Below the pieces are notes generated by a model. It worked only from the letters and a program-made list of their open reading frames with translations, ran no database searches and was not told where the DNA came from. DNA of 64,000 bases from Lepidodermella squamata (Eukaryota; Animalia; Gastrotricha). The stretch is taken from NCBI GenBank assembly GCA_047495785.1, contig JBLDXI010000032.1, forward strand, positions 1,116,001 through 1,180,000, written 5' to 3'. The position numbers were made by a program, and so were the translations under genes. Shown here piece by piece: positions 5,885 to 63,757 of this stretch (within the stretch, counting starts at the first letter, position 1; each line of letters begins with the position of its first letter).

Positions 5885-6173
5885 CATCTCTGAGGATCTT
5901 CGGGTTCTTCGGATTCTAGCAGCACGAAATCGAAAGCTGAGATGGTGAGCTTGTCGAGGGATCAATTCATTTTTAGAAGCTTTTTAATCTTGAAGTTTAT
6001 AATTTCTCTTTCAAAATGAATATCAAAATCTTTCAAGTTATGAATGTAAAATTACATTTTACCAGATTTTTATTCTCTAATAAGGGCCTTGACAGAACAA
6101 AAGCTTCCTTTGTCAATCATCCACTTTTGGCGCGCTTCGTCTTGCGTTCATTTTTTCGACTCCTTGTTGCAAA

Positions 6174-27500: not shown

Positions 27501-28067
27501 GCAGCTAAAAACGATGGTGCTACACCGCTATTCATCGCCGCTCGTAATGGTCACATAGAAATCGTAAAGCTTCTTGCTGGAAACTGGAAATCCGACGTTA
27601 ATTCTGCGACGAAAGATGGTACTACGCCGTTATTTATGGCTGCTGAGAATGGGCATCTACAAATCGTGAAGCTTCTCGCTGGCGACTTCGAAGCCGATTT
27701 GAATGCAGCGACGAATGATGGAGCTACACCGTTATTCATCGCTGCACAGCAAGGCCACCTGGATATTGTTAATGCTTTGACTCGCTTATTCAATGCGGAT
27801 GTAAATAAGGCGCGAGATGGCGGCTCCACACCGTTGATTGTCGCTTCATATCACGGTCGTCACTCTGTTGTAGATTTTTTACTGCAGGTGCCTGGCATCA
27901 GCGTAAATGCTCGAATGCGTTCTATGGGATGGACGGCTCTATCTGCAGCCATGAACTGTGACTCAGATGTGGCGCCTGATGACAAACAGAAAACAATCGA
28001 TATCCTGTGGAAGGCTGGAGCTGAGGCGCCCAGAATAGTCACAAGAAAGTTCAACATTCGCATTTAA
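24600..28067 (+). CDS. Ser/Thr protein kinase (NEK-like) fused to about 14-15 ankyrin repeats
   Basis: GSGCCGSV, YAVK, HRDIKPRN, DFG, YAAPE, SDWWSFG across short-intron exons. The last exon has tandem 34-aa TPLxIAAxNGHxxIVKLL repeats. Start codon uncertain. Confidence 0.85.
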
Positions 28068-38338: not shown

Positions 38339-38850
38339 ACAGTGAGACATCGTTGGTATACTGCAAGGAAAAGTTCCATCCCAAAACAAAAAGTTAATAT
38401 TTTTCGGCCCAATTCGAAAGCACTTGGTAAATCAATTTCTAGATATCTAGATGGGGAGGGATTGCTTAAACAGACCTTAAAACTGTGACGCTAACGCCAT
38501 GAAAACTAGCTCAAATGGAGAAAATAGCGATAGAACTTCCGTAATAGAATTTGCGGTTTTTAAAGATTATTCTAATCGGTATAATTTGTATATTCGGATT
38601 AACTGAAAAGGCGTGTATCAAAAAGTGTTATCTCAAAATTGATAAAAAATGGAAAGAGAGTTTTCCGAGCGGCGAGGCTCCGAGCCGAATACCCCAGGGG
38701 ATTAGGGGGGATTAGATAGAAGTTTTTCTCGCAGTACCGCCAGCAAATTAACCACTTGGCTTGCTGATATTTATTCAAGAGAAAGATTCAAATAAAATAA
38801 GAAAATTGATCATGAGATGTCTTGTTTTCGCGATTTTTTGCACGACCTAC

Positions 38851-40700
38851 ATGAAGCTCGATGATGGAAGTGTCCTGCCGCCTTCTACTGCCCTTGCTGA
38901 TGCACTGCTTGATCATTTCGTCAAACCGATGTCGCCCTACGTCGACCCCGATGCGGACGCTGCCACTCGCCAGTGGTGGCAACAAGTCGAGGACGATGTC
39001 GTTGCAGATCCTGACCTTCGTGCTTCCGATGTGATCCGCTTGCCCGCTCTCGGCGAGTTTTCTGTCAGTCAACGGATGCTCGCTGATGCTGTTAGCCGTT
39101 TGAAGTCCTTCAAGGCCCCTGGCTTGGATGGTATTCAAAACATCTACCTGAAGTGGGGTGGCCCCGTCCTGCAAACCCACCTTCGTCGGCTGTTCAACAT
39201 GTCTCTTGGCAGTCGCTACGTGCCTCAAGCGTGGAAAGCAGCGGTTGTTGTGCCTATCCCAAAGGCCGGCAAGCCGCAGAACCATGTCTCGTCACAGCGT
39301 CCTATCTCCTTGCTGCCGACTGACGCCAAGCTCCTGGAGTCGATCGTGGCTCGGTGGATGACCCAGTTTCTCGAAAGTCAACACCTTCTCCCTGAGAATC
39401 AGTTTGCATTCCGTCCGCACCATTCCGCGCCAGATGTCCCACTTCGCATCGTTCATCGCGTCCACGTCAACCGCTCCCTGCGCAAGAAGACTGTCGTGGC
39501 CGGCTTGGATGTTCAGGCGGCCTACGATTCCGTGTGGCACGCCGGGCTGATCCATAAGCTGGCCCAACTGCCTCTCCCGCGAAATTTGGTCGGCTGGCTG
39601 GCCGACTATCTTCGCGACCGTCGTCTGCAAGCTCGCGTGGCGGGCTCGCTGAGTCGTCAAGTCGTCGTCCATTGCGGGGTGCCGCAGGGTTCCCCGTTGT
39701 CGCCGCTTCTCTACATTCTGTACTACGCCGATTTGCTGTCCGCCCCAAGCGTGGATGGCACGTTGCTGCAGGCCTACGCGGACGATCTAACTGTCGTCGG
39801 CGAGGGTGGCACGTTCCCTGCTGCTCAGCGTCGCCTCCAATTGGAGCTCACTCGTATTTCCGACTGGGCCAAGAAGTGGCGCCAGAAGTTTAATCCCGCG
39901 AAGAGCGAAGTTATGCCCTTTGGTAACGCGTCCGTTGATGTTAGGCTCAACGGAGCCGTAATTCCGCAAGTCGAGTCGTTACGAGTTCTCGGTGTTCACT
40001 TGGACCCTAAACTGACGTGGAAAGTTCATGTGGACAAGGTCTCTGACCGTTGCCGCAGAAATCTGGGTTTTTTCAAACATCTCATGTTCACCCCTGGGCT
40101 GTCGCGCCGCTGGCGCCGCACCCTTTACTTGACTCTGGTCCGTTCGTGCTGGTCTTATGGGACCATTTGTCTGGCTACCGCCTCGAAGCAACAGCTTAAT
40201 CGTCTCGCAGTCATCCAAAATGATAGCCTGCGTGCAATGCTCCACATTCGTCGGGACGACAGGGTCCGCGTGTCGGAGTTGGAATCTCGTTGCCGCATCC
40301 CGAGTGTCCCTCGGTTTCTGGAACAGTGCCAGCGCCGTTATGTCGCCAAAGCCGCTCAGTTTGTCCTGCCGCTGCGCGAGGACCTCGAGAGCGTCCGCCT
40401 GATGGCCCGCCCCCCTCCGCGCTCGCCCTTCGTGCTGTTGAGCAACAGACTTCCTCGTGGTCCTCTGCCCGACTTCATAGGCTAGGCTGTTATTCTCTTT
40501 TCTCCCATCTTCTCTCCCATATCTTCCCTCTTTTTTCTTCACCTCTTCTTTCATGTTGTTTTTCTTTCCTCTACAGGCTGCCTTGCTTTTTATAAAATTC
40601 CTCCGTTAGCTACCGTTGTCTCCGCCATATTTTCTCCTTTTTACTCTTACCGCAATTCTCTGTAATGTGTTTCTCTCTGCTATCGATAACTACCCTGCAA
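38851..40700 (+). mobile_element. 5'-truncated LINE (Jockey/I-group-like) with intact RT domain
   Basis: ORF to 40485 has KAPGLDGI, RPISLL, QFAFR, GVPQGSPLSPLLY, YADD, LGVHLD. It is GC-rich relative to the host, lacks the endonuclease and has a pyrimidine-rich 3' UTR. Ends approximate. Confidence 0.9.
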
Positions 40701-40899
40701 CTGATAAAACCCTCGCCATCTCCCTCTCCGTCTCTTACGTGCCCCATCAATATGATGAGCATGGATACATCTTACTAGCACGCGCCTCTTGTTCCATAGT
40801 ATTATTAGAGAGTTATTTTGCGTATTTTGTTATTTGGAAAGAGGACAACAATAAAGATTTTTATGTTTATGTTTATGTTTGCATTCTGGTGTTGGTACT

Positions 40900-41389
40900 T
40901 CAAAGAGCGCAGTACTTGTAAGCTGATCCGCCTTTGCCCTTGCAGCGTTGGTGGCGACTCATGGCGTAGTCATCACCCCCTCGCTTCCGCAGGTAAGCCA
41001 TCCCGCCAGACCGCAAAAATCGCCCACCGCGACGCTTTTCAGGCGCAAAAATGTCCGCTAAATCTTCCTGATGGACATGCCGGTTGTGATGCGTAGCCTG
41101 GTGGGGATGCTTGCTTGTCAAAACAGCTATTTGACCTATGAAAAAAGTGGAATGCTCAAAAGCTTGTAGCGGAAGAGCTTATACCTGATGGTAAAAGACG
41201 CAATTCTTCGACCTCGTCGGCCTTCGGCTGAGTGTGGTGCGGTTTTGAAGCGCCGAGTAGGAACTCGTCAACAGCATTGCGCTTGAACTTCTCCGAGCTT
41301 TCCTCGTCAAGCTCACTTCGGCGAATTTGCGCATTAGCAAAGGTGCTAGCAAAAAGCACACAGGCTCCGGTAAGAACCAAAGCTCGCAT
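40900..41389 (-). CDS. Prepropeptide P1 (C-terminal disulfide-ring peptide)
   Basis: Exons 41389-41185 and 41135-40900: signal MRALVLTGACVLFASTFANA ...FKR...EKRR GGRFLRSGGMAYL RKR GGDDYAMSRHQRCKGKGGSAYKYCAL*. Confidence 0.85.
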
Positions 41390-41556
41390 ATTTAGAAATA
41401 AATGAAAATGAAATGAAATTATAAATGGTGTTGCAGAGCTTATAAGATGTCAGACATCTGTCTTGCTGACAAGGCGCCGACGTTAATTCGAACATTAATA
41501 AAATTCAGATCTACAGCATGATTGATTTTTTATTTCACGTCTACTTTACACTGATT

Positions 41557-41850
41557 TCAGCCAGGTCTCTCAAGTTTGAAGCCACTGTTACTCCTTTTTA
41601 CACGATGGCGGTAGGCAATTTGAGGCATAAAAGCTATATCATCTGAAGAAAGGACCAGACATTATAGAGGAGTTTTCATGCGATTTTTCAAATTACCCGC
41701 ATAATCCCATTCAGCTTGTTTAAGCGGCCGTAATTCTTGAGCATTAGCCATCCAATCGGTGTCGTATTCGGTGTGATCGCCATCTGCTCGGATGAAAGAT
41801 GTGAGCAAAAGGGCGGTTGCACAGCAGATCAGCGACAGCTTATAAATCAT
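41557..41850 (-). CDS. Prepropeptide P2 (SNSGFKLERP-amide)
   Basis: Exons 41850-41697 and 41642-41557: MIYKLSLICCATALLLTSFIRA DGDHTEYDTDW...RHRVKR SNSGFKLERPG*. Confidence 0.8.
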
Positions 41851-42074
41851 TTTAGATAGAATTTCAATGAAGGAATCACTAACTTTATTTTCATTATAAA
41901 AAGCCTGATTTTTCTCTTTTTCGGACAAAGTCAATTCACAACTTCTCAAGTTTTACTACCAAGAATACGCAAGCAACAAAAATAAATTCATTGATAAAAT
42001 CGATAGCGTGGAAAACCATTGAAATAGTGGAATTTCTAGTCATATTTCAGATTCTAGGCATAAAAGCTGATTGT

Positions 42075-42438
42075 TTAGCTGCAGAACTTGTAGGCCGATC
42101 CTGACTTTCCACACTTGGCCTTCCGCGCAGTGTTAACCAGCAATGGATTGCCATTGACACGTTTGCCGAATTCGATGCTTGACTGCCTATTGGCCGGTGG
42201 GAAGCGCCTCTTGGCAAACCAATTGCCAAAGTCCCGCTTGCTCAGATCTCTGATTAGCTCTTTCAACTGTTCATCCTCATCTAAGGAAATTACTTGATAA
42301 TCAGAGAATCTGGGTAAGTATATAACACGTACCTTCGTTTACTTCGCTAGCTTCGTTGTTATCATCGTCGATGTATTGAGCAGCAATCATGCTTGCAAAA
42401 ATAACAAGCAGAAATGCGAAAAGGTAAAATTTGGCCAT
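42075..42438 (-). CDS. Prepropeptide P3 (multi-peptide, C-terminal ring)
   Basis: Exons 42438-42333 and 42280-42075: MAKFYLFAFLLVIFASMIAA, acidic pro-region, KR DFGNWFA KR RFPPANRQSSIEF GKR VNGNPLLVNTA RK AKCGKSGSAYKFCS*. Confidence 0.85.
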
Positions 42439-42873
42439 TTTCGGAATATAATCGATTGACTAAATGGGAAATCACAAGAAGTGTAAAATAATTATTTTTA
42501 ATCGCGTCAATCGAAAGCCGGATATCGTTATCAGATTTTAAGAAAAAATGTCCGAAAGCAGATTTTACGAGGAAAACATATGTTCAGTATCGTTTTTCGC
42601 TGTATAAGTGCGAAAGGGAAAATTTCAGGAATTAAGAATTTCACAATATGTATAGGACCGTGAAGTGGATCAATCACAAAAGTGGAACGCTAGTTAAGAA
42701 ACTAAAAAGAAATATCCGGCCTCAGTTTGACAGTTTGTTGATGGGCTGATAAATAACAGAGCAAGCTATTTCAAACCATAAACTGCGCAGCTTTTTTGAC
42801 AGCGACACTGATGAGTGCAGCACTAAAGCTAAATAAAGTCATCTCAAAGGACGCAAACCAGGGCCGGCAGAGG

Positions 42874-43376
42874 TCACTTGCCAAACGCGGCTTTCATAGC
42901 CGAACCTCTAGCGGCAGGATGGTCTTGTTTCCTGGCCACTCTACGCATGCCACCATGGCGGTAAGCTGCAGGAATGGCGTATCGTTTGCCGCGTGCTAAT
43001 ACTCCAGGTGGATCCCAGGGTCGTTTTCCTTTAATCCGCATACGAGTCATTGGTGCGGCAAAACGCTTCCCAGCTCCGAAATGATGCGTATCTTCTTCTT
43101 CCTCACCACCAACGTATTCTAAAGGACATTATAAAACTAAATGAAAGAAAAAGAATGCATTGCTAGCTCACCACCAATGTCCTGCTCATCTGGGTCGTCT
43201 ACAACAACTTCAGCGTAATCTGCATCCTGTTGTTGAACTGGCACGTAAGCTTCATCAGCCCGGCGTTCGATTCCGTCGTAATTCAGCGAGCCATCTCTCA
43301 TCCAGCTATCATCGCCGCGGCGTGCCGAACAACAGCATGTGGCAATTGCGAGAACGGCAAACAGTTGCGAGTACAT
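42874..43376 (-). CDS. Prepropeptide P4 (four amidated peptides)
   Basis: Exons 43376-43172 and 43118-42874: ...THHFGA GKR FAAPMTRMRIK GKR PWDPPGVLAR GKR YAIPAAYRHGGMRRVA RK QDHPAARGSAMKAAF GK*. Confidence 0.85.
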
Positions 43377-43952
43377 CCTGATTTTTCAGCTTTCGTGACT
43401 TGAACGAAAAAATGAGTTCGCATAGCTCGTGGGTAAGAACAATTACAAGAAAACATATGTTAAGGTAGCTATACGCCTGTTTTCCTGTCACGCGATGTAG
43501 ATGCGTGACAATTCTGCGATCTTTGATAAGAAAAAGGCCCGTGATACATACGCATATGTCGATTGAACTAGCTTAGCTGGCGGCTGATGAATATCACTCC
43601 GCGGCAGGTTTTTCCAATAAAAAACAGGATATTTACCTAAGATTATTTTATTAGTAAGGCGACAAAACGTGTGGGTGATGGATGATTATCAAGGGCCGCT
43701 AAAATATTCGGAATTTGAAGAGGAAACAGCCGAAATTAGGAGAGTCCAGATATTGATTGATGGTATGTGTGGGTGTGCCAACAGAAAGTAATTAATCGGA
43801 CAAAACATACACAGATGTCCACTGAGAAATGCGTTATCGCTCGCCAGGAACGCCTTGTAATGTATGATCTATCTATAACAATAATAGCTATGGCCTATAC
43901 GAATCATGCACGGGATGGAGATTTCCGCTTTCCGCTAGTAATCGGCGATAAA

Positions 43953-44258
43953 TCATTTCCAATTCCAGTTTGATGGGGACCAATATCGGTTGAAGCGCTC
44001 TGAGAAACTCGCCGGAGACGGCTTGTATTGGCGTGAGTTCAACAGCTCCATGAAAGGGTCATCCCCAGCTAAAATAACGACAGATTAATCGACCTGAAAA
44101 ATGATCCAAAAACTAAGCCACTCACTGTAGACGTTTTCTGGCGGTATGTATGGAGTTTCTTCAACCGCGTTAGGTGCCCAGTCGTCTTCCTCTGCGACGA
44201 GACCATTGATCGTGATGACATGGGCTGCAAGTAAAGCGAGGGCGAAATAGCGAATCAT
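43953..44258 (-). CDS. Prepropeptide P5 (ends WNWK)
   Basis: Exons 44258-44126 and 44068-43953: MIRYFALALLAAHVITING LVAEEDDWAP...GDDPFMELL...RFNR YWSPSNWNWK*. Absent from the ORF track. Confidence 0.8.
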
Positions 44259-44689
44259 TTTTTGGCTCGACTGAAACGCGGTTTCAGGATTCAGTTTTCT
44301 ATGCGCGTGCGATCACTCGGATCAAAAGGTCGTTATGCTCCTTCAGTTCGTTTGCATGACAGCTAAAGCGACTGTGCTCTAATAGGATGACGTTGAATTA
44401 ATCTGATCGCCGATCGAAAGATGCAATACTGCAATGCATACAGAAAATTCCAAAGCACGTGAAGATGCAGAGTTAAAGCTGACGAAAGTTGACAATTTTA
44501 AGTGAATCGATTTTAATCAATTAGGCTTTGTCGCAAGGAAGCATTAATCAATTCGCCGTCCGTCACTATGATTGATAACTCATGCTCTTTAAAGGAATCG
44601 TTGAATTTATTATGCATTAGTTGCATCGTCGAAACAAATAATTTTCTTAAAATTGAGATTCAATTCCAAATTTTGCGGCCATTTCTATG

Positions 44690-44989
44690 TCATTTCCAAT
44701 CCCATTTTCGGGGAATCCGATACTGCGATTCTCTTGAACGGTAGGTTTCAGATGGTTGGAACCCAGCTGCGAGCAAGTCTTTCAGTGGATCATTGCCCTC
44801 TAAAGAAAGAAAACTTGAATTGCATTATTGAAAGGCTTCCTTAAAAAGCTCACTGTAAATAATCGCCAAGTTTATCGGCGGACTGTCGTAAGCTTCGGGT
44901 GGTATCCAGTCATCTTCTTCGGCAACTGAGCTAGGTATAGCTAAAGCCTTTCCGATAAGAGCCAAAAACAGCAGATAATGTGTAATCAT
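44690..44989 (-). CDS. Prepropeptide P6 (ends WDWK)
   Basis: Exons 44989-44854 and 44799-44690: ...VAEEDDWIP...GNDPLKDLL...YRSR ESQYRIPRKWDWK*. Confidence 0.8.
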
Positions 44990-45294
44990 CACTCCGCTGA
45001 AATGAAAAATGATGTATGCAATTTCTTTGTTCGGCAAATTTTACAAAACAACTACGATGTTGTTTTTATTCTGGTGGTCATCATGAAAAAATGAATCAAT
45101 GAAATGATGTGGGCAGCAAGCCCACGAGAGATGATGTGATGAAATCTCATTTTTGTGACGAACATGAAATGTAATATATTTTGTTGTTTATTTGTTAGTC
45201 ATTTATTTATCATTCATTTAGATATTATTAGCCAAAAATTCTATTTTTGAATTCGATAATGATCAATAAATACTATTTGTAGCGTTTCGGACGT

Positions 45295-45676
45295 TCATCC
45301 GCGATAAAAACGCCCTGAATCCCTTACGGGAGGCGATTTTTCGGGGGCTTCGTTGTCTATTTGATGGAAGTATTTCGACCAGGCCCAGGGCCGCATGTCC
45401 GTCGCCCTTTTGCCTCTGATTCGGCCTCTGTGAACGTAGAAAGGTCGTTTGACAAGCTGGTAAGGCACCTCGATATCGGAGGAAAGGAATTCTGGCATTA
45501 ACATTGAAAAATATCATTGGTCAGAGTTATGGTGTGTAAAAAGGTTAAAGACCTTCACGATCATTGCTAAGAGTAGCCGGTTCTTCATCAGGTGACCAGG
45601 AATCTTCATAATTAGGTCTGACATGTGCGATCACGTGAGAAGTAAGAACTGTCGCACAAAGAATAATGCCAATCAT
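45295..45676 (-). CDS. Prepropeptide P7 (PFYVHRGRIR-amide; ...GRFYR-amide)
   Basis: Exons 45676-45553 and 45491-45295: MIGIILCATVLTSHVIA...EDSWSP...KR PFYVHRGRIR GKR ...SPPVRDSGRFYRG*. Confidence 0.8.
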
Positions 45677-46576
45677 ACTACTTGCCATGTTTTGGCTCTC
45701 CTAAAAATTGTTATTTTGCACAATAAAAGACAATCGCAGACGAAAAACGGCGATAAAGTGATTCTTGAATGCCCATCATTGTGACAGTTGCAGGGCAATG
45801 CTCGACATTTCGGCATTGCGCCAACTAAAACGATTTTTGTTGTTGTTTTATGAAGTCTCTGCTGATTCATTTTGAGTTGCTTGTCTTGTCCACTCACTAA
45901 ACTCAATTAACGATCGATTGCTTTATTCGGATGGGAATGATGTTTTCTGCGACTAAACAATGAAAAACGAGTTTCTATGCTCCTCAGGATTCTTATTGTT
46001 AACATACTTGTTAACATATGGAACTTGAAAGAAAATAAACAACATTGTTATCAATTATCTGGGAACCGGAAACCGGGGCGGATGAATGCGCGCTGGCTCC
46101 AATGTACGAAAATCGACATTACTCTGAGCTGTCACACTAATGACGGCATATGCGTTCTTCCTCAAGCAATGTACCTTGCGTCGTGCCATGTGCTATAAAT
46201 ACCGTAAATACCGAATTACATGGCAGGAAAGAAATGAAGGGCAGGGGCAGACCTATCCTAAGAACTTAGGGCCTGGTTTGCATTGATCTTGGGCATGCGA
46301 GCAATTCAATTTTCTGGAAATACCCTCGGCTGAGAAAAAAATAGAAGGCGCTGCCTTATAGTTTAGTATTTACGGTAGACGCCAAATTTCATGGCAGACC
46401 CTTTATAATTCATGGCAGACACAATTCGAGGGACTAATAACCGATTTATTTGCAAGGAAAAATTGAGCTTTATGCGCATTTCGCTGCATGCATTACATAG
46501 GGAAATGAATTGTATGGCGATTGTTCGCAAATAAAATACTATGGAGTCTACTTTCAAGTTTGTCATAGCGTTCTCA

Positions 46577-46853
46577 TCAAAATGTGGGACGAATTCCGCG
46601 ATTTCTGTAAATGTAAATCGGCCGCTTAGCAAGAATTAATGGTTGCAAGTTGTAGCTTGTCTCATATTCTGTTGAAGCAAACAGATTGAATCATCTTTAT
46701 TCTATTTGTAATGCTCATACCTCCGGGATTGTACGGGGTCTGTGCAAGTGAGCTTGCTGGTATCCAGTCATCCTCTTCCGCATGTTCTCCGTAAGCGATT
46801 ACGGTGCATGACACCATAGAAATAGCCAAGAAAATAGCCAAAAGCTTGGTCAT
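46577..46853 (-). CDS. Prepropeptide P8 (PIYIYRNRGIRPTF)
   Basis: Exons 46853-46721 and 46668-46577: MTKLLAIFLAISMVSC...AEEDDWIP...LILA KR PIYIYRNRGIRPTF*. Confidence 0.8.
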
Positions 46854-47736
46854 ATCCAGTATTCCTTGCTAAGAAATAAGTTTTATTCAAATTGTGATTC
46901 TGCGACGATACGAGCTTAATATAACGTCGGTGTGACATGTCTGCGGGGCAAATATTAGAAATATTCGAATAAATAATGACAATAAAAACTTGTTAATTGT
47001 TGGTGGTGTGATTGCTTGTTTTCATGCATTTTGTTGTTGTTGCTGCTGTCATTTCAGCATTATCAAATCGTTAGATCGATCCCAATATTAGCAGCTCTTT
47101 CGATCGACAAGTTAAATTACCACTTAGGGGCAAAACAAGGCTTAACAGGAGATCGTTAGCGTTTCGGTATAACTCTCAATTTGACGGTAACTCCATCTTG
47201 TCATTGTTCTCTAGTTGCGGTAAATAGTTTACCGTAAACGGCACTACACTGCGACACTAAAGCGTAAAATACTCGCGTGCGGTAAAATTAATTTCTCTGC
47301 GGTAATTTCAGCTCAAACTATCTTGTAGGAACAGTAGGAATTACAAGCATATTATGGAGGAATAGAAATGGAGTTGGAACTGCGCTCAGGTTATATGATG
47401 GTGTGCGCGCGCGGCCGCTCGCGTACTTACAATACAGCGTGTTACAGCAGTTTCATTGATAACAAATTCGTCCTTGAATTCGTATTCGTAGCGTTGTATT
47501 TCATTTCATTTCAATTTGCAGACCATTTCATCAAATTTGATATCAGATATTTGAAAGATAGCAAAAGTCGATAAGAAATAAAGTACCTATATAGTTTATT
47601 TCCATCCTTCATCTTTAAACATTTTCATCGTAAAATCTTAGGTGTCATGCATGTTTATGTTATTTCGGCGTCGAATAATCTTAGCGGCAAGTGAGCTCCG
47701 TGCTCCGTTGACGTGATTATCACAAGAAATACCACG

Positions 47737-48082
47737 TCATCCGCGTCCTTTCCGGTTAACTTGTGGCCGGTACGAGGCGCGGTAAAAACCTCCCGGAATC
47801 GGGTACCTTTTACCGACCACATAGGGTTCTGTTGGATTCACATTGTACCATTCCAGAACGGGATCATCAAAAGGCTCTGAAACAGAGAATGTTTGACGTA
47901 TAGTATTCAACGGTGAATGGTACCGACTTACTGACTGACTCCATAGGGGCAAGTTCGCTTTCTGGGATTTCATCACGTCCATAGACATACGGCGGGACAG
48001 TTGGTTTGCCCAGAAACGAGAAAAGGGCAGACGAGGCGGCAAAGCACGTTGCCAAACAGCATAGCGTAGCCAACTTGAGCAT
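47737..48082 (-). CDS. Prepropeptide P9 (four amidated peptides)
   Basis: Exons 48082-47932 and 47876-47737: signal, LFSFL GK PTVPPYVY GR acidic...NPTEPYVV GKR YPIPGGFYRASYRPQVNRKGRG*. Confidence 0.82.
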
Positions 48083-48351
48083 TTCCTTCGTGTTCTCGAT
48101 TATATAGACGGAGATTTCAAGGAGTGAAAATATGAAGCGTTTTATGCCTTAAATATGCCTCGATTTTCCTCATGGCAATGAATTAAAATCAACAACAACA
48201 GATAAACATTTCCGCTAGTTGATGGCTGTCAAGTCAAATGCAACAATGGCCGTATAATTTTATCGATCCAACAATCATTTAACCCAAATAACCCAAAGAG
48301 TTGAATTAGCATGTGATCGTCTATTTTTTTATTCAAAGTATTACAGCGACT

Positions 48352-50249
48352 TTAATAAAAATTAACAAAATATACTAGAGACAACAACGACAGAAAATAT
48401 GTCCGCGATTTGCTAAAATTGGGCGAAAAACTGTTAGCATTTTCTGAATCGGCATCTTCTTGCGCGTTCATCGAGGATCGCTTCATGCGAAACTGAAGAA
48501 CAAGCTGAGATACCTCGTTATCATAGTGAAGCACCAGGGTGTATATGCCTATGTATTTCTTGAGAGCCCCTTCCGTTGCCAGCTCAGTCACAATATTGAG
48601 GTGAAACTGTCCGGATGACTCCATGTAATTAGCCTGTAACGTGAACTCAGGCGGCGCTGAAACAGCTTCAGTTTTATCCCACCGAACAACGCTGTACATA
48701 AGCGTCGAATTGACATCGCCACTCGCGGGTAAATTGAGTCGTTGCTTCACGTGGCAGGTTATCTTAGCTCGGGACGGAAGGCCGGGTGTGATTGTCATAA
48801 TTGAATTACGTTGACCTTTTGTTTGACCACTGCTCGGAGGACCGCCGTTAACGTAAAATCGGCACGAATCCGTGTAAACAACACCGCTGTTGTATTCGAA
48901 GTAAATTTCTTTCACAGGTCGGCCATTTCCGGACTCGACACATTGGTAAGCTCTTCTTGTAATTGAAGACTCTAAAGAGGCCGTAAACCATAAGCAACTG
49001 GTGTCGGATCCTCTCCAGCCTAAGAAAAAATTGAATTAATAGCAATTTGATGATCGATGTCCGAATTCATACCTTTTAGAGGGAAATCGTCGTAAACTTT
49101 GCTGGTTTCGTTGTACCATTTCCACCTCAACGCCCTGGCGTCGCGAAAACGAGCTTCAGAGCAGTAAACCAGGTAATCTCCCAGAGCTACAGTAACGTTT
49201 GATTTTTGCACGCCTGATTCAATGAACTTGGGTTGCATATTTGTGCTAGAAGACGTGATGACCTGTCTGCCGTAGTCCATGCACCTCCACCACTCAAGCA
49301 CGTCTTCGCTTGGGCTTGGTCTACATCCGAATTCTGACAAGTTTCCCACACCAGGCTCGCCAGTTGCTATTACTGTTGTCGCAACCGTCCGGTCGTCGAA
49401 GAAAACAGGCACACAGCGAGAGTCGACAGGGCATCGGTGTTCAATCCTATTCTGAGCGTAGTAACTACTGACATCGACAATCGTATCGGCGTGAGCGAAA
49501 ACTTTTGGCACATGGCCAACTTTTGAACTCAGCTCGAATTCTCCGCTGATTTCGACGGTCAATACTCGCGATAGGTCCTCGTTAACAGGTTTAGCCGTGC
49601 ATTTCATACTGATACCTTCAGATAACGGAAATGAGCTAAATGACCGGCCGTGGTAGGTCATCATAACCGGCGGGTAAAAGAGCCGCGTTTTCGGGAAAGA
49701 CGTCCAGTTGTGAAGGCCGAAAATAACGGCTTTAGTCGTTGGTGGCAGGCGAAATTTGTGAACAAATATTTCAGACTCAAACTGGCCAACGGTTCCAGCG
49801 GCGCAATCTACACTGAATGACTGCAGGAACTTTTGATCAACAGAATACGTCAAATCTTCATTTTCGATCTGTAACGAAATTCTGCTAGTCGATAAGCGGC
49901 GAGTTAAAGAATTGTAAATTGTGACGTAAACTTCGAGGTTCACGTAAATTTGTTCGTTAGCTTGCCATAAAACTGCGACAGATTTAACTTGGTGCTCGTT
50001 GCTTATCCTGTAGTAAGGCAGTGCGGAGATGTTCTGGCTGTTGGGGTAGGGATTGCCTAGTGAAGTTCGAAGGGTGACAGGGCCGACTTTCCGGAAGTGG
50101 ACCTCCCCGTAGCTGAAGTCGAGCAGTGGTCCGCGTCCGCCGTCGACCAGCAGTAAGTCTGGTCGAATGATGAGAAATAACGAAGCTGTAGCTAGTGCGT
50201 GGGTGAGTAATTGATAGCACTTGACGCGGCGTTTAGCTGACGACCTCAT
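48352..50249 (-). CDS. Cell-surface protein with two Ig-like domains and a probable GPI-anchor signal
   Basis: Exons 50249-49073 and 49019-48352 join in frame. N-terminal hydrophobic signal, Ig patterns (LVYC..RWKW..AYQC; ITC..VRWDK..GIYT) and a hydrophobic C-terminus with no cytoplasmic tail. Confidence 0.6.
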
Positions 50250-54326: not shown

Positions 54327-57300
54327 ATGCAACTTACGCTAAATTCCCCAAACAGAGGATCATCAGAGGCTAATCAGGTAATACTTTGAAATTTCAGGCC
54401 AACTTCAGCTGAAAATCACTTTGTTTCAGCATGCTATCACTCATTTCGTAACTAATAACTTCACAATCCGACAATGTAGACGATATGTAAAAATTAACTG
54501 GTCAAAGGAGGAAGCTCATGGGTTCCACTCCGAAGATCTGAGGCGCCATTTTGCAGAGTAAATAAAAAAGCTTCACTTTTGCGATTCGAAACAGTGATTT
54601 TCTTTAGAGATGATTGCGCTTGTGGTCGATCGATCAATTGGCATCAAAGCCAAGGGCTGACGCTTCTTGCGAAAACTGAGCCATCAAGCAATTCCCCACG
54701 GAAGCCGATCAGCCTTCAAGAGGTTTTAGATGACTTTTCATCCGAGGAAGCCACGAATAATTACTGGGATCCTGGCAAAGATACCCTGCAAAAAATGTGC
54801 ATGAGCTGCTTCGGGGAGATAGACTTCTACCTGGTTGATGATCAGTTGGATACAGGTAATGAGTGGAATTCGGTCATGAGAAAAGCTCCTGCGAAATATC
54901 TCCGCCTCGAGGGTCGAATCGAAGAAGACTATTTGAAGAAAGTAGCCGCTATGATGACACTGGGAGCCTTCTGGAAGCTGCCTGAACCTGGGGTGATTTT
55001 TAGCATTTTTGGTACGCCGTTCTACAGCAGCCCTGAGAAAGAAAACCTTCTTATTGATGAAATTGCTGAGTTGCTCAAATCTTCCAACAGAGACAGTAAG
55101 TAGAAAACTTATTATGAAGCTTCAACCCTTTTTCTATGCTTCGCAGATATTTGGCTGGTGAGCCATGGCAAAAATATTGGTGTTGGTCAGCTGGTTGGTC
55201 AAGCGGTGGCTAAGGCTCGTTTCGAAAGACCTGAGCGGCATGTGACTTGCATTGGAATCGACTCTTGGTCCGCAACGTTGAATAGGAAAAGCCTAGATTC
55301 TGCGGAATTCACGACCCCGAACAGCAACGTCAAGTCTTTCGGCCGATGGCCTGCTCAATATGAAATAGACAATGTCACACCCCACAAGAGCCGGCCACGC
55401 GTCAGTAATTGTGGCCTTCATTACCTAGATCACAATCACGATTGCTTCCTACTTGTCGATACTGGGAAGGAAGTCAGTTTGGTTAATGGTATAACGTCTA
55501 ATCCTTCGCATTATCGTGAGGTCGTCGATTTCAGGCTAAAACTGGTAGACAGGCTTACAAATTTGGCCAGAATTAGCCTACCAGACACAACGTCTTCACA
55601 AGCATCTGTTCGGACTAATAAATCTGAACGTTCGTTGTCATCTTCGTTCTTCTCCGGCGAAACTTCTGTCGAAATGCTGTTGGAAAGGAGGGCTGGTTTT
55701 TATAACAGAACGCCTGGATTGATGATCATAGTAGGTGGTGGACTCGATGCTTTAGAGGCGGTGCGTGGAAACCTCGCTGAAGGGTCGCAATCTCCTAGTT
55801 TTGACAGCTTGACTCAAGTGAAGACGCAGCCGGTTTTGTTGATAACTGGCTTCGGGGGCCTTGCAGACTTGATGGCTTTCGCACTTCAATTACACGAACC
55901 AAAACACTCACTCCCTGGCACTAAAACCACAAAAAAGCAACGAGAGGATTATGCTCTCGAGAGGTAAGAGCCCCTAATAATACTTAGCATTTCTCAAATG
56001 AGCTAATTTCATATTATAGGGCAATTTACGAGAGAAAACTTATTTCGCACCCGGGTTTCCAACACATGCTCAAAGGAGTGGCGCCAGGAGACGAGAGGAC
56101 CAAGCAAGAAGCTGACGTTATCATAAAGCTTGGTCAGTGTCTAAACTCTGGTCGCCGCAACGTAAGTAGCTTTGTCCGTTCCGTTCTTTCTCACTCTCGA
56201 TTTATTCTGTTAATAGATATCTGCATTAGACATTCTTTCGAAGGAAAAATCTCTGAAGAGAGCTATTTTCGATGCGATATTTTCAAGTGAGATTTGAGGC
56301 TTTTTCTCATGTTACCATGTAAAATTCACTTTTATTCACAGCCAAGTTCTATTCAAGTAAGAAGATAATGGAGCTTTGTTTGCTGCTCAACGATTGCAAA
56401 GGTGCTTCGCTTTTGCTTGAGGAGGTCGAATCTCTTGGACTAGTAAGTCTGAAATTAAGTCTGAATTAAGGAAAGCAATCATGAAATTCACTTTTGCTTG
56501 ATTAGGATACGACGCTTTTCGATTTTAGTTCAAAACATGCCATTCTCTTGTTTGAGCATGGCCTGGTCGAGTTCTACAACGTTTTCAAGTCTTTTCGCTA
56601 CTTCAGTCTCAAGTCCATAATAGGAGCTCATTTCATGACATCGTTATACCGTGGTCTGCACCATCAATCAGCATATAACCCAGGCGTCCGTCTTCTCTTG
56701 AAGCTCGTTCTCAAAAGAAATTCCAGGAATTTTAGCAACATTGATGATCTACTTGGCAGCAGCGATGCTGCAGATTGTTTCAGTGAGCTTTTCGATTCGC
56801 TCTCGGGTAATGAAACTGCTAGACGAGAACTCTACTCGAAAGACGTGACAGACCACCGTCGTTTCACCCGGGACACTTTCTTGCTCCAAGTGTTGCTTAA
56901 CCACCACGAATTCGCCGTCCAGTTGTGGATCGATGGATCTGATCAGTTCTGTATGGCTATACTCTCTTCTATTATGCTGAAAAACCTGGCTAAAGCTTCT
57001 CATTCCTCGCCGTTGAATGAACAATATTCGAGCATGTGTAAAGAATGGGAAGAACGAGCCGGTAGGATTCTGCTAGCATGCGCTCAATCGAAGCAAGTCA
57101 ACTCGCTCGACGAATGGATGGACTGCGAGCGACTTATGTTGCATCAGAAGCCTCATGGGGATGAGAGGGTTTTTGACATGACAATGCGTTTCCGCATCGA
57201 TGAAATCACTGCTATGAACGCAACTAAGATGGAGCAAAGGCGAAAATGGTATGGCCATATTGATTGGGATACGTTATCGGGAATTGTAAGATTTCGCTTA

Positions 57301-59156
57301 TTCCTATTCGATCTAATAGTTGACTCAACGTTTTTCCAGATATGGGTTATTGCTATATTCCCCTTACTTTGGCCATTCATCAGATTTATCAAATTTGTTA
57401 TCGCTTCACACAATGGCGGCAAGCATTCTGATTTGGAGAATAACAACCACAACGATGAGGAAAAGATCTCTTCCCAACAAACAGGCAAGCTGGTTCAAGT
57501 TCAGCTTGTCAAGCCGATGTCTTGTTGTTACAAATCTGGCTTCGAGCCAGACCTTAGTGGACAGATCTCATTCTCTAAAGCGCTCAAGTACCTTTACAAG
57601 GCTCCAATCACTAAATACACGACTCATCTGGTAAGAATTTGACTCGACTAGTTTTTGTGCTTTAGCTTTACATTGCGGTAATTCCAGACTTCATGGATCT
57701 TTTTGGCGATGCTCATGACCCAAGTAGTGATTTCTGAAATGGCACCAGATAGATACAGCCCTAGCGAAATAGCAGTTTGGATTTGGTCCTTCTCACTTTT
57801 CAGCGAGTATCTGCGACCGTCTAAGATAGATCATTTTGGAAAGGCACTAAAGCGGTACCAACCGGATGATCCCTACTGGCTTTCAATCGGCCGCCATTTT
57901 CGACTGCGAATTGTTCAGACGGTTTTTCTAGTCGGTATGATTCTTCGATGGTGCAGTGTTAAAGACGTCATTTACGCCAGAACAATTTACTGTTTGGTCT
58001 GCGTCTATTACTGGATGCAGATCTTGGAGTTGGTGTGCAGAGCCAACTCATTTTTCGGTCCCAGGGCAATTGTTATGCTAAAATTAGTAAGCAAATTTGG
58101 CGCAAGATTTTAATTTAAACCGAATTTCCCTTTTCATTACAGGTGAAAGAACTACTCTTTTTTCTGGTCGTTTACGTCGTGGTTCTTTTGGCCTTCTCAA
58201 TTCCTATTTTTGCTATGCTTTTGCCTAACCAGCTATTTCCTCAAAAAGCGACTGAAGGGGAAAATTACTTCAGTTTGGTGATAAACATCGCTTATAGCCG
58301 TTGGTGGAATCTCTTCAACGTAATCGGTCTCGGCGAATTTGATGGCTCATGCTCGGCAGCTTTGTCAACGCCCGTCAATTCTACCAATCCCATTTGGCTG
58401 TTTGACGGACCTAACAAAAGACATGGATGTCCCCACCGAAATTTTGTGGCCGTGTTGCTATTCATTCTGTTTATCATATTTACGAATCTGTTTCTGCTCA
58501 ATGGTAAACATATTCGCTTGCCATAATAATTCTAACTAATATTCATTTCCCGGTATACAGTGCTCACGGCTTTTTTCACTGTCACTGTACAAGGAAAATG
58601 GAAAGAGGCTGAAGTTGATTGGATTTATCGATTTCATCGGACAATTCAAGAGTTCCACTTCAAAGCAGTGCTACCACCACCATTGAATATGTTACAACTT
58701 GTTTATGAATGGATCGCATACGCTGTCAGAAATCAAAGCCTAAACCGTAAGATTCACAGTACATCGAACAGCGAACGGGAACAAGATAATTCAACATTCT
58801 GCTGCGACGGATGCATTCTTCAGAACGATTGGCCGATAAGCGAATCGCAGAAGAGATATTTTACTGCTATTCAGCGAGCAGCAGCTAAGTTCATTGTTCA
58901 GGGTTCGAGGAAGCCTGATGCTCCACTTCAGATGGCCACAGCAAACCCGGATGACAAGGCTTTCACCCGGCAGATGTCGATGAAACTTGACGAAGAGATG
59001 GCTAAGCTGAACAGGCGCTTGGGAGAGCTGGAACGACAGCAGCAACGAGTTGCTACGAAGGTAACAAATACCACATCGGAGCTTCTGCTGATAAGCAAGA
59101 GTGATCCTACTGACTCTTATGGCTACGGCTGCCCTCAGTCTCAAAACTACGCTTGA
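54327..59156 (+). CDS. TRPM-like cation channel
   Basis: CACGR, FGEIDF, WKLPEPGVIFSI, CIGIDSW, LDHNHDCFLLVD (SLOG/MHR), APITKY, GPRAIV..K, LFLLNVLTAFF, TRP box W..RF + LPPPLN, C-terminal coiled coil. Confidence 0.85.
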
Positions 59157-59288: not shown

Positions 59289-60331
59289 TTAGTGGTCTGG
59301 CGAAATCAGCTCGGCTGGAGCATTCTTCGAAATGTAGTACTCAAATTTGGCCAATAAATCCTTGTCCGTGAAATGATTGCGCCAGTCACCGATTTGCCCC
59401 TTGCGGATAAAGTTGACTTTATCGCCCCAGACTCCACGCTTAAAATTGATGAGATGTTTAAAATACATTGAAAAATTACTTATTTTACCGCTTTCATGAA
59501 AGAAAAGTTGACATCGTCGTTTTGTTGCATCGATTCGAACTTGCTTCGTTCGATAATCTTGTCAATGATTTCTTCACTCAAGTCTTCGCCAAGAAATTCA
59601 GCCACTTTCTTTATCGTTGCTCGTGTATCTTTTTTCAGTTCCTCGTAGCTGACAAAGAGAATAGGTTTTCCTTTTTGCTTAAGCTCAAAAATTTCTTTCA
59701 GGTGATCAGGGTAAGGGCCCCAGAAAACTTCACCCTTCAGGAAATAGTCGTTGATGAATTGCTCAAATGTCATGTCAAAAGGGAAAGCGGTCATGCCGAT
59801 ATAGTGATGATACAGTGAGACGGCCACATCTTTCGGATTCCGGTAAACGTACACAACTTTGCTGTTAAAAACATGCCTGGGAAGCAAGGATCCAGGCATG
59901 TGAGTTAACAGGACCCTTGGCGACGGCAGCTGAGCATAAAACTTCGGTGAAGCGGGTGGATGACGAACGTCCAGCATGGGAAACTTCAAGTGGTTCGGAA
60001 TGCTGCCAAAATTCTTGGTTTTAATCATATACAGGATGTAGTACATCCAGTTGGTTCCTTTGGTAGATGTAAAAAAGGAATGATTCAACCATTATTATAC
60101 TATCTTACCACTCTTCGGGAATGTAAGTAGAGTCACGTCGTCTTCAACAAACGGAAAATTGTACAGCTCATTCCAAATGTACGGAATGTTAGGGAACAGC
60201 CAATGGCCATGGCATTGGATAAGACAGGGCCCTTGCTTTTGATTGCCCAGCAATTCCATACTTTGCACATAGCGAAGCATGTCTAGCTGCTCTATGGGTT
60301 TCTCTGTGATGAATTCTTCGCGCTGTTCCAT
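59289..60331 (-). CDS. Cytosolic sulfotransferase, copy 1
   Basis: TFPKSGTNW, THMP, RNPKDVAVS, RKGQIGDW over 3 exons. Confidence 0.9.
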
Positions 60332-61288
60332 TGTGTGATTGAAATTAAGCAGGCAGGATTGAAATGTGATTGACGCCAGGAACCTGGTGTTAGGGAACTC
60401 AACTTCAGTTAGAAAGTACGTACCTAATCTTATTTGCAAACGAAAAGGATTGTTGCCCCGTTATTTTTGCTGATAAAACCGCGAATCTCATTGAAAGGGA
60501 GGCCGCGTACAGCTACACCAGTTTTTAACTGCTTGACCCAGTATGCCGATGCGGCAACGGTGGAAACGATAACTAGTTTTGCAGCTGATAACAAATTTTG
60601 CTCTTCCTCCAAATAACCAAAAACTGACTGGCATAATCGCCGGTGTGGGTAAAAAGTGCAAGGCACGGCCATGTGGGGTGGGTTCGTTCACTCCCGAATA
60701 TAAAACGCACTGTGTTATGTCAGATAACGCCGTAATTGAACCGGTAAGGAACCCAAGCTTTTGGGGGTGTGGCAAGCACGTATACCGTGTAGTTTTTCAG
60801 GGGGTAACAAAACAAGGAAAGGTTTGTTTGGAAGGTTTTAAATCTGATTGGGTTGGCTCAAAAAACACGCAACACGCGATATTTGACATTTGGCGCGACA
60901 TTCAGGCGGTTTCCGCAAGCTCCATAGTTTGCGGACGGTCAGTTTCAGCAGTGAACCCTACAGGAAATTCACCGCAGGTTGCTTTAACGCAGGGTCGGGT
61001 TCAATGTTTGTCTTGGATCAGCCAAATTTGTAAATCTATGGTGAAGGTATCATTGCGATCGTTGTTTAAATAGCATGTAGAATAATTTTCGATCCGTGGC
61101 TTGAGCGAAATTTTTGGACTAGTGCGAAACGGAAATTTGAAACGCAAAAAAGCTGGCTGTTTGATTTTCAACTTAAATTTAAATTTGCAATATATTATCG
61201 ATTCAAGCACAACATTTCCTTGAAGGCCTTGCTTCAAAAAATAGCAATCATAAATAGATGGGTCACGCTCAGTTCCATCAAGGTGCTT

Positions 61289-62340
61289 TCAATGATCCAG
61301 TGCCAGCAGCTCTGCAGGCACACTTTTCGCTATGAATTCTTCGAACTTGGCCAGCAGTTCCTTGTCCGTAAAATGATTGCGCCAGTCACCGATCTGTCCC
61401 TTGCGGATGAAATTCACCTTGTCACCCCAGACTCCGAGCTGTAAATTAGAGCCTCATTTAACCATGCAGGCTAACACAAAAACGCATTGGTTACCGATTT
61501 CATGAAGGAAAAGTTGACATCGTCGTTTTGCTGCATCGATTCAAATTTGCTTCGCTCGATGATCTTGTCGATGATTTCTTCGCTCAATTCTTCGCCGAGA
61601 AACTCTGCCACTTTCTTGATCGTTCCTCGGGTGTCTTTTTTCAGTTCCTCGTAACTAACAAACAGAATAGGCTTCCCTTCTTTCTTTAGCTTCAAGATTT
61701 CTTGCAGGTGTTCAGGGTAAGGGCCCCAGAAGACTTCGCCCGTCATGAAATACTCCTTGATGAACTGTTCGAACGGCATGTCAAAAGGCCAAGCCGTCAT
61801 GCCGAGGTAATGGTGGTACAGTGATACGGCGACATCTTTTGGGTTTCGGTGCAGGTAAACCACCTTGCCGTTGAAGATGTGCCTGGGCAGTAATGAGCCA
61901 GGCATGTGCGAGCAAAGAACCCTAGGTGGTGGAAGTTGGGCGTAGAAGTTAGGTGAGGCAGGAGGATGTCGAATGTCCAAGAGTGGGAACTTCAAATGGT
62001 CGGGAATTTCGCCAAAATTCTTCGTCTTCATCATGTAAAGGATGTAGTACAGCCAGTTTGTTCCTTCGGAAAGAAAACACGTAGAAAAGGATGATGGATA
62101 TACACCGAATTGCTTACCACTCTTTGGAAAGGTCACTAGAGTAACGTCATCTTTAACGAATGGAAAATTGTAAAATTCATTCCAGATGTATGGAATGTTA
62201 GGAAACAGCCAGTGGCCACGGCATTTGATTAGGCAGGGCCCCTGCTTCTGATTGCCCAAAATATCCATACTCTGAGCATATTGAAGAACGTTCAACTCCT
62301 GTGGAGGCTTGTCAGTGATGTACTCCTCTCGCTGTTCCAT
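61289..62340 (-). CDS. Cytosolic sulfotransferase, copy 2
   Basis: Same PAPS-binding motifs and exon structure as copy 1. Confidence 0.9.
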
Positions 62341-62709
62341 TTTGCTGTGGGCCAAACTGTGTCGTGTCCTTAAAAACTCAAACGGAGAAAACGCAGTTTG
62401 CGCAGCTGTGCTAGGGCCTTTTTCTTATGTGAAAAGTGGTGATAAGAACGTGCTGCTGTCCGGTCTTTTTACTGATATAGCTCGAGTTTGAAAAAACATT
62501 CTTGAAAAAAACAGATTGATGGCAGCGATGAGGTCCCTAGGCAGAGCTCTAATATAAGGCAGATAACATGATACCCGAAACCAGGAAATTTTGAAGATAT
62601 GCGGGCAGAATTCATGATAGATAACGTGTCATATATTGTTTATTTCTACCACTTTTGCGTATGTATTATAACCTGGAAAGAAAGGGAAAGAAATTAGAAC
62701 GATCCATAA

Positions 62710-63757
62710 TTACTCGTCTTGTGAAATCAACTCAGCCGGAGCATTTCTTGCGATGTAATCTTCAAACTTAGCAAGCAAATCACGGTCAGTGAAGTAATTC
62801 CGCCAATCACCGATTTGGCCCTTGCGAATGAACTCAAACTTCTTACCATCAGGCTTAAATGAAAAGTAATTAGGAAGGCGGAGGTTATGATAGAACCGAA
62901 ACTATACTTACCCTCTTCATTAGAAATGAGTTGAAGTCATCATTTTGCTTCATTGATTCGAATTTGCTCCTCTCGATAATTTCGTCGATGATTTCTTCCT
63001 TCAAGTCTTCGCCGAGGAATTCGGCAACGCGTTTTATCGTCGACCGTGTCTCTTTCTTCAGCTCCTCGTACTTGACGAACAAAATAGGTCTGCCTTGTTG
63101 TTTCAGCTCCAATATCTCCCTCAAGTGGTTAGGATAAGGCCCCCAGAAAACTTCCCCCTTCAAAAAATATTCTTCGATAAATTGTTCGAACGAAGCATCG
63201 AAAGGCCATGCTGACATGCCGATGTAGTGATGGTACATTGACACGGCAACATCTTTCGGATTTCGCACCAAATATATCACTTTCCCGTTGAATATATTCC
63301 GCGGGAGTAAACACCCTGGCATATGCGAACAAAAAATTCTTGGCGAATCAAGTTGGGCGTAAAATTTCAGTGAATTAGGCGCATGCCGAGTTTCGAGGAG
63401 TGGAAATTTCATGTGGTCCGGAATGCTGCCGAAATTGCCGGTCTTAATCATGTAGATTATGTAATACAACCAGTTGGTACCTGTCGAAATTGATACATAA
63501 ACTGCCCTAGCTTCGATGATCGATTAAAGCTTACCGCTTTTAGGGAAGGTTAATAGGGTCACATCGTCCTTTGCGAAAGGGAAGTTGTACATTTCATTCC
63601 AAATCAATGGAATATTAGGCCAGAGCCAATGGCCTCGTATCAGAACAAGCGGTGGCCCATGTGATTGGTTGCCTAATAGGGCTAAACTCTTGAGGCACTC
63701 AAAATAAGTCATTTCTCGAGGATTTTTGTCCCTTAAGGAGTCTTCTTCCTTGTCCAT
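62710..63757 (-). CDS. Cytosolic sulfotransferase, copy 3
   Basis: Same PAPS-binding motifs and exon structure as copy 1. Confidence 0.9.

Follow-up and report, generated by a model that had tools for sequence, protein, structure and literature searches.

We describe here a tandem array of nine small genes in the gastrotrich Lepidodermella squamata, located on the minus strand between positions 40900 and 48082 of a 64,000 nt window (the whole stretch of DNA analyzed, positions 1,116,001–1,180,000 of contig JBLDXI010000032.1, assembly GCA_047495785.1). From the predicted precursors, it is somewhat probable that the nine genes encode extracellular signalling peptides, similar to neuropeptides or peptide hormones, and not toxins or antimicrobials. 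We favour this reading because of the architecture of the precursors, their enrichment in amidation signals, the conservation of the peptide cores, the synonymous character of the coding polymorphism, and the short, non-amphipathic nature of the predicted products. The genes are numbered in the order of transcription on the minus strand, from P1 (at 48082) to P9 (at 40900), which is opposite to the numbering in the initial annotation of this DNA (its P1 is our P9).

Gene models and transcripts of the array

Listing the frame-keeping GT..AG introns across positions 40500–48500 led to nine consecutive two-exon models for proteins of 74–149 aa (Table 1), so that all nine of the tandem genes initially annotated, with a leader, an acidic pro-region, a phase-1 intron and basic sites, could be rebuilt. 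Every model starts with an ATG followed by a leader with its hydrophobic core within residues 4–17 (best 10-residue Kyte-Doolittle mean of 2.2–3.2) and with small residues at -1/-3 near positions 17–23, which provide plausible signal-peptidase sites. A single phase-1 GT..AG intron of 49–61 nt interrupts each of the nine genes where the acidic N-terminal part ends; exon 2 is basic, generally contains KR or RR sites, and is open to the stop codon. The net charge is split in all nine precursors, from -3 to -10 in the pro-part encoded by exon 1 and from +1 to +10 in the product of exon 2. The whole window contains, on both strands, 44 candidate open reading frames (ORFs) starting with ATG and a hydrophobic leader; among them, the nine from the cluster are consecutive, co-oriented, and nearly the sole ones with an acidic stretch after the leader, and no tenth family member adjoins the array. 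A strict TATA box (TATATAA, 24 nt upstream of the ATG) occurs only in P1 among the nine genes, and no upstream k-mer was shared between them above background.

Two public sequencing runs cover the locus: X1, consisting of whole-animal contigs, behaves as cDNA, and X2 is DNA. X1 was considered cDNA because its contigs occur only on predicted exons and untranslated regions (UTRs), leaving several intergenic bins at zero depth, and because they include a poly(A) end, an end with a cap adaptor, and a spliced leader. The cDNA comparison took in eight genes, P2 to P9; there was solid cDNA cover for six of the eight, and four were spliced exactly as modelled, the skipped introns showing CT..AC ends on the plus strand. 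For P9, a 399 nt contig with zero mismatches joined 41133/41135 to 41183/41185, skipping 49 nt. The joint 42280>42333 of P7 skipped 52 nt, in a contig whose depth of 208 was the highest of the cluster, and a 635 nt contig over 43654–44343 skipped exactly positions 44069–44125 (57 nt) in P5. Likewise, the joint 44799>44854 of P4 skipped exactly 54 nt, and a SMART-type adaptor at 45042 marked the 5′ end of this transcript. The contig for P6 (42695–43050) comprised the 3′ UTR and most of exon 2, without a listed junction, and that for P3 was on exon 2 (45318–45466), with a 3′ end tagged by a SMART-type adaptor at 45202, just past an AATAAA.

The intron lengths of 49–61 nt given by the initial annotation are therefore exact in the cDNA for P4, P5, P7, and P9, but that of P3 probably needs correction. 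Two donors keep the frame in this gene, GTGAAG (67 nt intron, 108 aa) and GTCTTT (61 nt, 110 aa); the P3 junction is absent from the reads, and GTGAAG appears more likely because the donors from the other eight genes are all GTA or GTG. For P8, just two intron models were possible.

The mRNA of P7 is trans-spliced with a leader. Beyond 42458, its X1 contig extends at the 5′ end by 27 letters that are absent from the window, and whose reverse complement corresponds to a leader end ...ATCTGCGAATTTGATTTGTGTCTAAG. The spliced leader, of ~26–30 nt and ending in ...GATTTGTGTCTAAG, occurs 45 times in the genome (loci L001–L008), partly in tandem arrays of ~680 bp, and in the one locus that was read (L005, e.g., L005:1500-1530) each copy is followed by GTATGT or a similar GT donor. 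We conclude that there is trans-splicing because the end of the contig equals a multi-copy genomic leader, the copies read have a GT donor, and an AG precedes the ATG of P7. The leader RNA genes had no match in Rfam, and a full-text literature search retrieved no paper containing the leader sequence. The poly(A) site of P7 was revealed in X1 by a poly(T) loose end at 41868, on the minus strand, 16 nt past an AATAAA; the ATG of P8 follows after only 18 nt and has a TTAG just upstream. There is therefore no room behind P7 for a promoter of its own for P8, which may depend on read-through and trans-splicing, in an operon-like fashion.

Processing signals, paralogy and polymorphism

Downstream of the leader sequences, 21 runs of at least two K/R residues were counted; eight of the nine genes contain one or more, and P5, for which basic cleavage sites had also been initially claimed, contains none. 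The motif G[KR][KR] occurs six times, versus 1.3 in shuffled sequences (P 0.002), and in four of the nine proteins the C-terminus is G or GK (P 0.003). Glycines positioned to serve as amidation donors, either C-terminal or just ahead of basic sites, are found in P1, P3, P6, P7, and P8, which are the same five amidation-bearing genes of the initial annotation (there P9, P7, P4, P3, and P2, respectively).

The arrangement of these signals differs among the precursors. In P1, GKR is followed by YPIPGGFYR... and the protein ends in GRG; in P2, KR precedes PIYIYRNRGIRPTF; and P3 shows KR-PFYVHRGRIR-GKR followed by a 35-residue peptide with an RFYR-G end. P6 has a very acidic spacer, three GKR, one RR, and a terminal GK, with around five predicted peptides, and P8 contains VKR followed by SNSGFKLERP-G. 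The precursors of P7 (KR, KRR, GKR, and RK sites; C-terminal end ...ARK-AK-CGKSGSAYKFC-S) and P9 (KRR and RKR sites; C-terminal end ...HQR-CKGKGGSAYKYC-AL, with CKGKGGSAYKYC as the loop) are the only two of the nine with a single C-terminal disulfide loop behind a basic residue. P4 and P5 terminate in RKWDWK and NWNWK, respectively.

Our proposed processing scheme is based on the sequence and on what is established about the regulated secretory pathway. In this scheme, the leader would carry the precursor into the endoplasmic reticulum, and the acidic pro-part at the N-terminus, where the D-[DS]-W motif is found, would be a spacer or a sorting piece. The KR, RR, and KRR sites would then be cut by subtilisin-like convertases, the basic residues would be trimmed by a carboxypeptidase, and any C-terminal Gly so exposed could be converted to an amide by a PAM-type enzyme. 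Naive cutting at all basic runs would release ~14–18 short peptides of 7–35 residues, about eight of them amidated; the predicted products include PFYVHRGRIR-amide, FAAPMTRMRIK-amide, PWDPPGVLAR-amide, FPPANRQSSIEF-amide, and SNSGFKLERP-amide, as well as the two C-terminal disulfide-loop peptides.

Candidate convertases and a PAM-like enzyme for this scheme are encoded in the genome, which could therefore do the chemistry. A PAM-like gene contains Cu2_monooxygen, Cu2_monoox_C, and NHL-repeat exons in a row on one strand (G000:C20, ~2.5925–2.5948 Mb), and there are about ten loci with the convertase P domain (P_proprotein). The best copper-monooxygenase locus was rejected as PAM because it carries a DOMON domain, and is DBH-like (Table 1). 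As a separate observation, both halves of the fold typical of copper type II ascorbate-dependent monooxygenases are recognizable at ~40 genomic loci, mostly in large tandem arrays on G000:C13 (~1.99–2.36 Mb), and also on C7, C15, C19, and C32 (~2.18–2.20 Mb); the usual set of PAM, DBH, and MOXD genes is far smaller.

Pairwise relatedness among the nine proteins was evaluated from Smith-Waterman scores against shuffles, expressed as z. The highest value was for P4-P5 (z 16; P4 is the closest paralog of P5), followed by P7-P9 (8.9), P2-P4 (8.2), P2-P3 (8.0), P2-P5 (6.9), P5-P8 (4.8), P2-P8 (4.5), P6-P7 (3.4), P1-P5 (3.1), and P1-P6 (2.9). A D-[DS]-W motif is situated right behind the leader in six of the nine precursors, as AEEDDW (P2, P4, and P5), EDSW (P3), DDSW (P6), or DTDW (P8), and GDDP..ELL is a further conserved piece within the presumed spacer. 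The remaining likeness consists of blocks starting at cleavage sites, namely KRP[FI]Y[IV] (P2 and P3), R.RI[KR]GKR (P3 and P6), GKRY.IP (P1 and P6), R.GGM (P6 and P9), GK.GSAYK[FY]C (P7 and P9), and W.WK-stop (P4 and P5). All the motifs by which the initial annotation had linked the paralogs (EEDDW, GSA[YM]K, R.RI[KR]GKR, GKR-Y.IP, and W.WK) are present. Conversely, its picture of a pre-pro part kept constant while the mature peptides vary strongly is not supported, since exon 1 is only 17–37% identical between paralogs and the peptide cores are the conserved parts.

At the DNA level, the cluster contains five short repeat families, of which two, including the sole family with three copies, fall on coding motifs (AEEDDW and W.WK-stop). 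There is no long non-coding DNA similarity between paralogs, indicating that the duplications are old. As degenerate DNA, AEEDDW and GSAYK[FY]C, the only two motifs scanned genome-wide, were found in the cluster and nowhere else in the 121-Mb genome (151 contigs). A protein search of the same genome with exon 1 of P4 found only itself, and this search was too insensitive. Judging from their sequences, we consider the nine genes as old tandem paralogs linked by motifs.

In the stretch over which X1 and X2 were compared with the assembly, ~40% of it coding, substitutions were listed at 37 sites and indels at 10. The nine coding substitutions (four in P4, two in P5, and one each in P3, at 45400, P6, and P7) were all synonymous, and the 10 indels were all non-coding, in introns, UTRs, and spacers. 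In P5, for example, there were two synonymous coding variants versus seven substitutions and one indel in the 3′ UTR. Taking into account that ~0.25–0.3 of random coding changes are synonymous, the probability of nine out of nine by chance is P ~1e-5. Because of this pattern of substitutions and indels, it is very unlikely that the reading frames are not translated and under purifying selection; nothing pointed to diversifying selection within the species. Likewise, exact splicing together with purely synonymous polymorphism led us to reject the idea that the models are RNA without coding function or ORFs that arose by chance. Heterozygosity or divergence between strains is locally high over P4 and P5: across 44049–45247, X2 shows two haplotype-like sets of contigs that are 90–99% similar to the assembly; their introns and spacers differ by numerous substitutions and indels, yet there were zero amino-acid changes.

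Searches for relatives were consistently blank. The nine exon-2 translations retrieved nothing from Pfam at E ≤ 10, and a HMMER profile of exon 2 from P9 and P7 had no matches among 1.84 billion representative proteins. Word-index searches of 5.8 billion proteins with exon 2 from P7 and from P6 found no relatives, and a metagenome scan with the P9/P7 profile gave 183 pattern matches, none of which was confirmed. These blanks are weak, in that the queries were exon translations and the libraries seem to contain few gastrotrich sequences, with even the cDNA version of X1 absent from them. A full-text literature search for six peptide strings returned nothing, and in the literature on neuropeptides from gastrotrichs or Lepidodermella we found no catalogue of gastrotrich peptide precursors, nor did any of the searches bring up an existing annotation of the nine genes. 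A language-model feature search retrieved only neighbours below the lead threshold of 0.9; those of exon 2 from P9 included six clusters of neuropeptide precursors (neuropeptide S, DH, PDH, galanin, NMU, and PYY; 0.82–0.85), which is a weak lead that reflects likeness in composition, not homology. As far as these searches reach, the family is lineage-restricted, unnamed, and without detectable relatives, in agreement with the initial view that it does not correspond to a named family.

Probable signalling peptides and competing readings

Several observations weigh against signalling peptides. An acidic pro-part followed by a basic C-terminal part, as in the nine genes, is also how many host-defence precursors are laid out. 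P4, with one dibasic site, and P5, with none, both lack an amidation Gly and are the genes that classic cutting fits least. P2 has no cover in X1, and P8 has a single weak contig that is chimeric (depth 3.35, with an opposite-strand join). The leaders were called by hydrophobicity plus the -3/-1 rule and not by SignalP. Additionally, no homolog from which to transfer a function was found in the protein libraries, Pfam, or the metagenome scan. Lastly, the contig depth, which reaches 208 in P7, might point to abundant expression of the kind seen in glands, even if depth in X1 cannot be calibrated and was not used for ranking expression.

Part of these observations could be explained if the genes encoded exocrine host-defence, antimicrobial, or toxin peptides, with the acidic pro-piece neutralizing cationic C-terminal peptides until their secretion by glands or epithelia, and with the tandem family diversifying in response to prey, predators, or microbes. 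The anionic pro-part and cationic exon 2 of all nine genes would agree with this, as would a tandem, lineage-specific family without homologs in our searches, the high X1 contig depth for P7, P6, and P5, and the existence of cationic peptides with Arg and Pro, such as RPIYIYRNRGIRP and YPIPGGFYRASYRPQVNRKGR, which loosely recall the proline/arginine-rich peptides of insects. However, the cleavage sites themselves account for much of the positive charge, and most naive products are of 7–17 residues, with charges of +1 to +4, hydrophobic moments mostly below 0.3, and hydrophobic fractions of 0.2–0.55. We also looked for cationic amphipathic peptides, defined by at least 12 residues, a charge of at least +2, ~40–60% hydrophobic residues, and a high helical hydrophobic moment, a definition that covers helical types only and not those rich in Pro/Arg. 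No product combined these properties, with only GGRFLRSGGMAYL coming near (charge +2, moment 0.46); among the other products of at least 12 residues, most had moments of 0.02–0.30 and the rest were anionic spacers, with hydrophobic fractions of 0.2–0.47. Furthermore, the precursors do not have a cysteine framework, their pre-pro part is not the conserved part, the nine coding polymorphisms are synonymous, and the presence of several differing peptides flanked by GKR in a precursor is a neuropeptide layout. We therefore regard an exocrine role as fairly unlikely, and do not follow the initial annotation in its leaning toward toxins or antimicrobials: the peptides are short and of low hydrophobic moment, and just two have a disulfide, a single one.

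The products could also be small secreted proteins that remain uncut or are cut once, such as reproductive or egg, pheromone-like, cuticle, or adhesive-gland accessory proteins, with dibasic and Gly motifs that are partly incidental. The lack of usable dibasic sites in P4 and P5 points in that direction, and the conservation of D-[DS]-W and GDDP..ELL in the supposed spacer suggests a function for that part. Nevertheless, G[KR][KR] and terminal G or GK are well above the values from shuffles, the conserved blocks begin right at KR or GKR in P1/P6, P2/P3, and P3/P6, and the sequences, of 74–149 aa, have no Pfam match; this possibility seems quite unlikely to us. Finally, P7 and P9 might be diverged precursors of cyclic peptides of the somatostatin/allatostatin-C/urotensin-II type, around which the cluster grew. 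Their single disulfide loop (C-x9-C in P7 and C-x10-C in P9) is the most C-terminal element, follows a basic residue, and ends in A-Y-K-[FY]-C, resembling the core of urotensin II; this core is F-W-K-Y-C, and the ring of somatostatin-14 is C-x10-C. Against this origin, exon 2 of P7 and P9 has no match in Pfam (E ≤ 10) or among 1.84 billion proteins, the motif is too short to exclude chance, the Lys register differs from that of somatostatin, and the loop is absent from the other seven paralogs, making it very improbable.

With signalling peptides as the preferred reading, orphan prohormone-like precursors are a familiar kind of gene, so that the family is new but its kind is unsurprising. Even so, nine gene models (six solidly covered by cDNA) and ~15 predicted peptides are a useful annotation for a neglected phylum, and constitute the first concrete, transcript-backed models of peptide precursors for gastrotrichs. 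More far-reaching, although doubtful, is the possibility that the array is a gastrotrich-specific exocrine arsenal, for defence, prey, or mates and eggs, produced through processing of the neuropeptide type, or that its cyclic members are the first somatostatin/urotensin-like peptides of the phylum. Venom and skin-gland peptides arose from hormone-like genes, which provides an analogy for such an arsenal. If either were true, the array would be the first testable secreted-peptide system in a phylum with almost no molecular physiology.

Genomic context and comparison with known systems

Table 1. Coordinates of the genes and related features (window positions for P1–P9 and the trans-splice acceptor).
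Feature	Initial annotation	Position	Strand	Details
P1	P9	47737..48082	-	Exon 1 47932–48082; intron 55 nt, GTAAGT..TTTCAG; exon 2 47737–47876 including stop; 96 aa
P2	P8	46577..46853	-	Exon 1 46721–46853; intron 52 nt; exon 2 46577–46668; 74 aa
P3	P7	45295..45688	-	Exon 1 45688 to 45553 (or 45559); exon 2 45295–45491; 110 aa (or 108)
P4	P6	44690..44989	-	Exon 1 44854–44989; intron 54 nt; exon 2 44690–44799; 81 aa
P5	P5	43953..44258	-	Exon 1 44126–44258; intron 57 nt; exon 2 43953–44068; 82 aa
P6	P4	42874..43376	-	Exon 1 43172–43376; intron 53 nt; exon 2 42874–43118; 149 aa
P7	P3	42075..42438	-	Exon 1 42333–42438; intron 52 nt; exon 2 42075–42280; 103 aa
P7 trans-splice acceptor		42459..42461	-	AG at 42461–42460; first mRNA base 42459, 21 nt before ATG
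P8	P2	41557..41850	-	Exon 1 41697–41850; intron 54 nt; exon 2 41557–41642; 79 aa
P9	P1	40900..41389	-	Exon 1 41185–41389; intron 49 nt; exon 2 40900–41135; 146 aa
PAM-like gene		L015 (G000:C20:2588000-2597999), ~4575–6764	-	Copper monooxygenase halves plus lyase-like NHL exon
DBH-like gene		L013:2072-3865 (G000:C12)		With DOMON

The window has a G+C content of ~42% and holds NEMP, TRPM, ankyrin, and sulfotransferase genes. Directly downstream of P9, a 574-aa open frame with an RVT_1 domain (E 5e-35; 38761–40485, plus strand) corresponds to a copy of a retroelement next to the cluster. A short dispersed repeat is indicated at ~46197–46326, in the P2–P3 spacer, where the depth in X2 rises to 236–259, versus ~83, and nine contigs have loose ends on either side. 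Three tandem genes for cytosolic-type sulfotransferases (Sulfotransfer_1, E 1e-43 to 4e-48) occupy positions 59480–63469 on the minus strand. The exons of a TRPM-type channel (55158–57642, plus strand; SLOG and TRPM2-like domains) and a gene for a 547-aa, single-exon ankyrin-repeat protein (26424–28067, plus strand) have no evident tie to the peptide cluster.

Spiralian pro-neuropeptides have been catalogued (PMC8557429). The genes of the array resemble the nlp genes from Caenorhabditis elegans and the npp-type genes from flatworms in having a signal peptide, acidic spacers, varied peptides flanked by KR or RR, and Gly amidation donors, as well as in being small, with few introns, and with paralogs that keep a peptide core. 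They differ from them in the lack of detectable sequence similarity and in their organization as nine paralogs in a 7.2-kb array with a common phase-1 intron and a D-[DS]-W motif in the pro-region. Many families of neuropeptide-like precursors are confined to one phylum.

The array also shares with the genes for conotoxins and frog dermaseptin-type peptides a tandem or multigene organization, small precursors with an acidic pro-piece and a basic mature part, dibasic cleavage, and frequent amidation. In those superfamilies the pre-pro region is conserved and the mature peptide hypervariable, with an excess of non-synonymous change in the latter. However, the leader and pro-part are weakly conserved in the cluster, whereas the mature cores are conserved; additionally, there are no Cys frameworks and the polymorphism is purely synonymous. 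Individual members recall other peptides. The C-terminus of P5, WSPSNWNW, has two Trp six residues apart, as in the W(X6)W-amide of myoinhibitory peptides/allatostatin-B, but it ends in WK-stop without a Gly donor, is present in a single copy, and has no Pfam match, and P4 does not have the first Trp. Likewise, P7 and P9 are similar to precursors of somatostatin, allatostatin-C, and urotensin II in that the cyclic peptide is the last one, behind a basic site, and has an aromatic-Lys-aromatic-Cys end, whereas the content of the ring is different and does not include the Trp-Lys pair.

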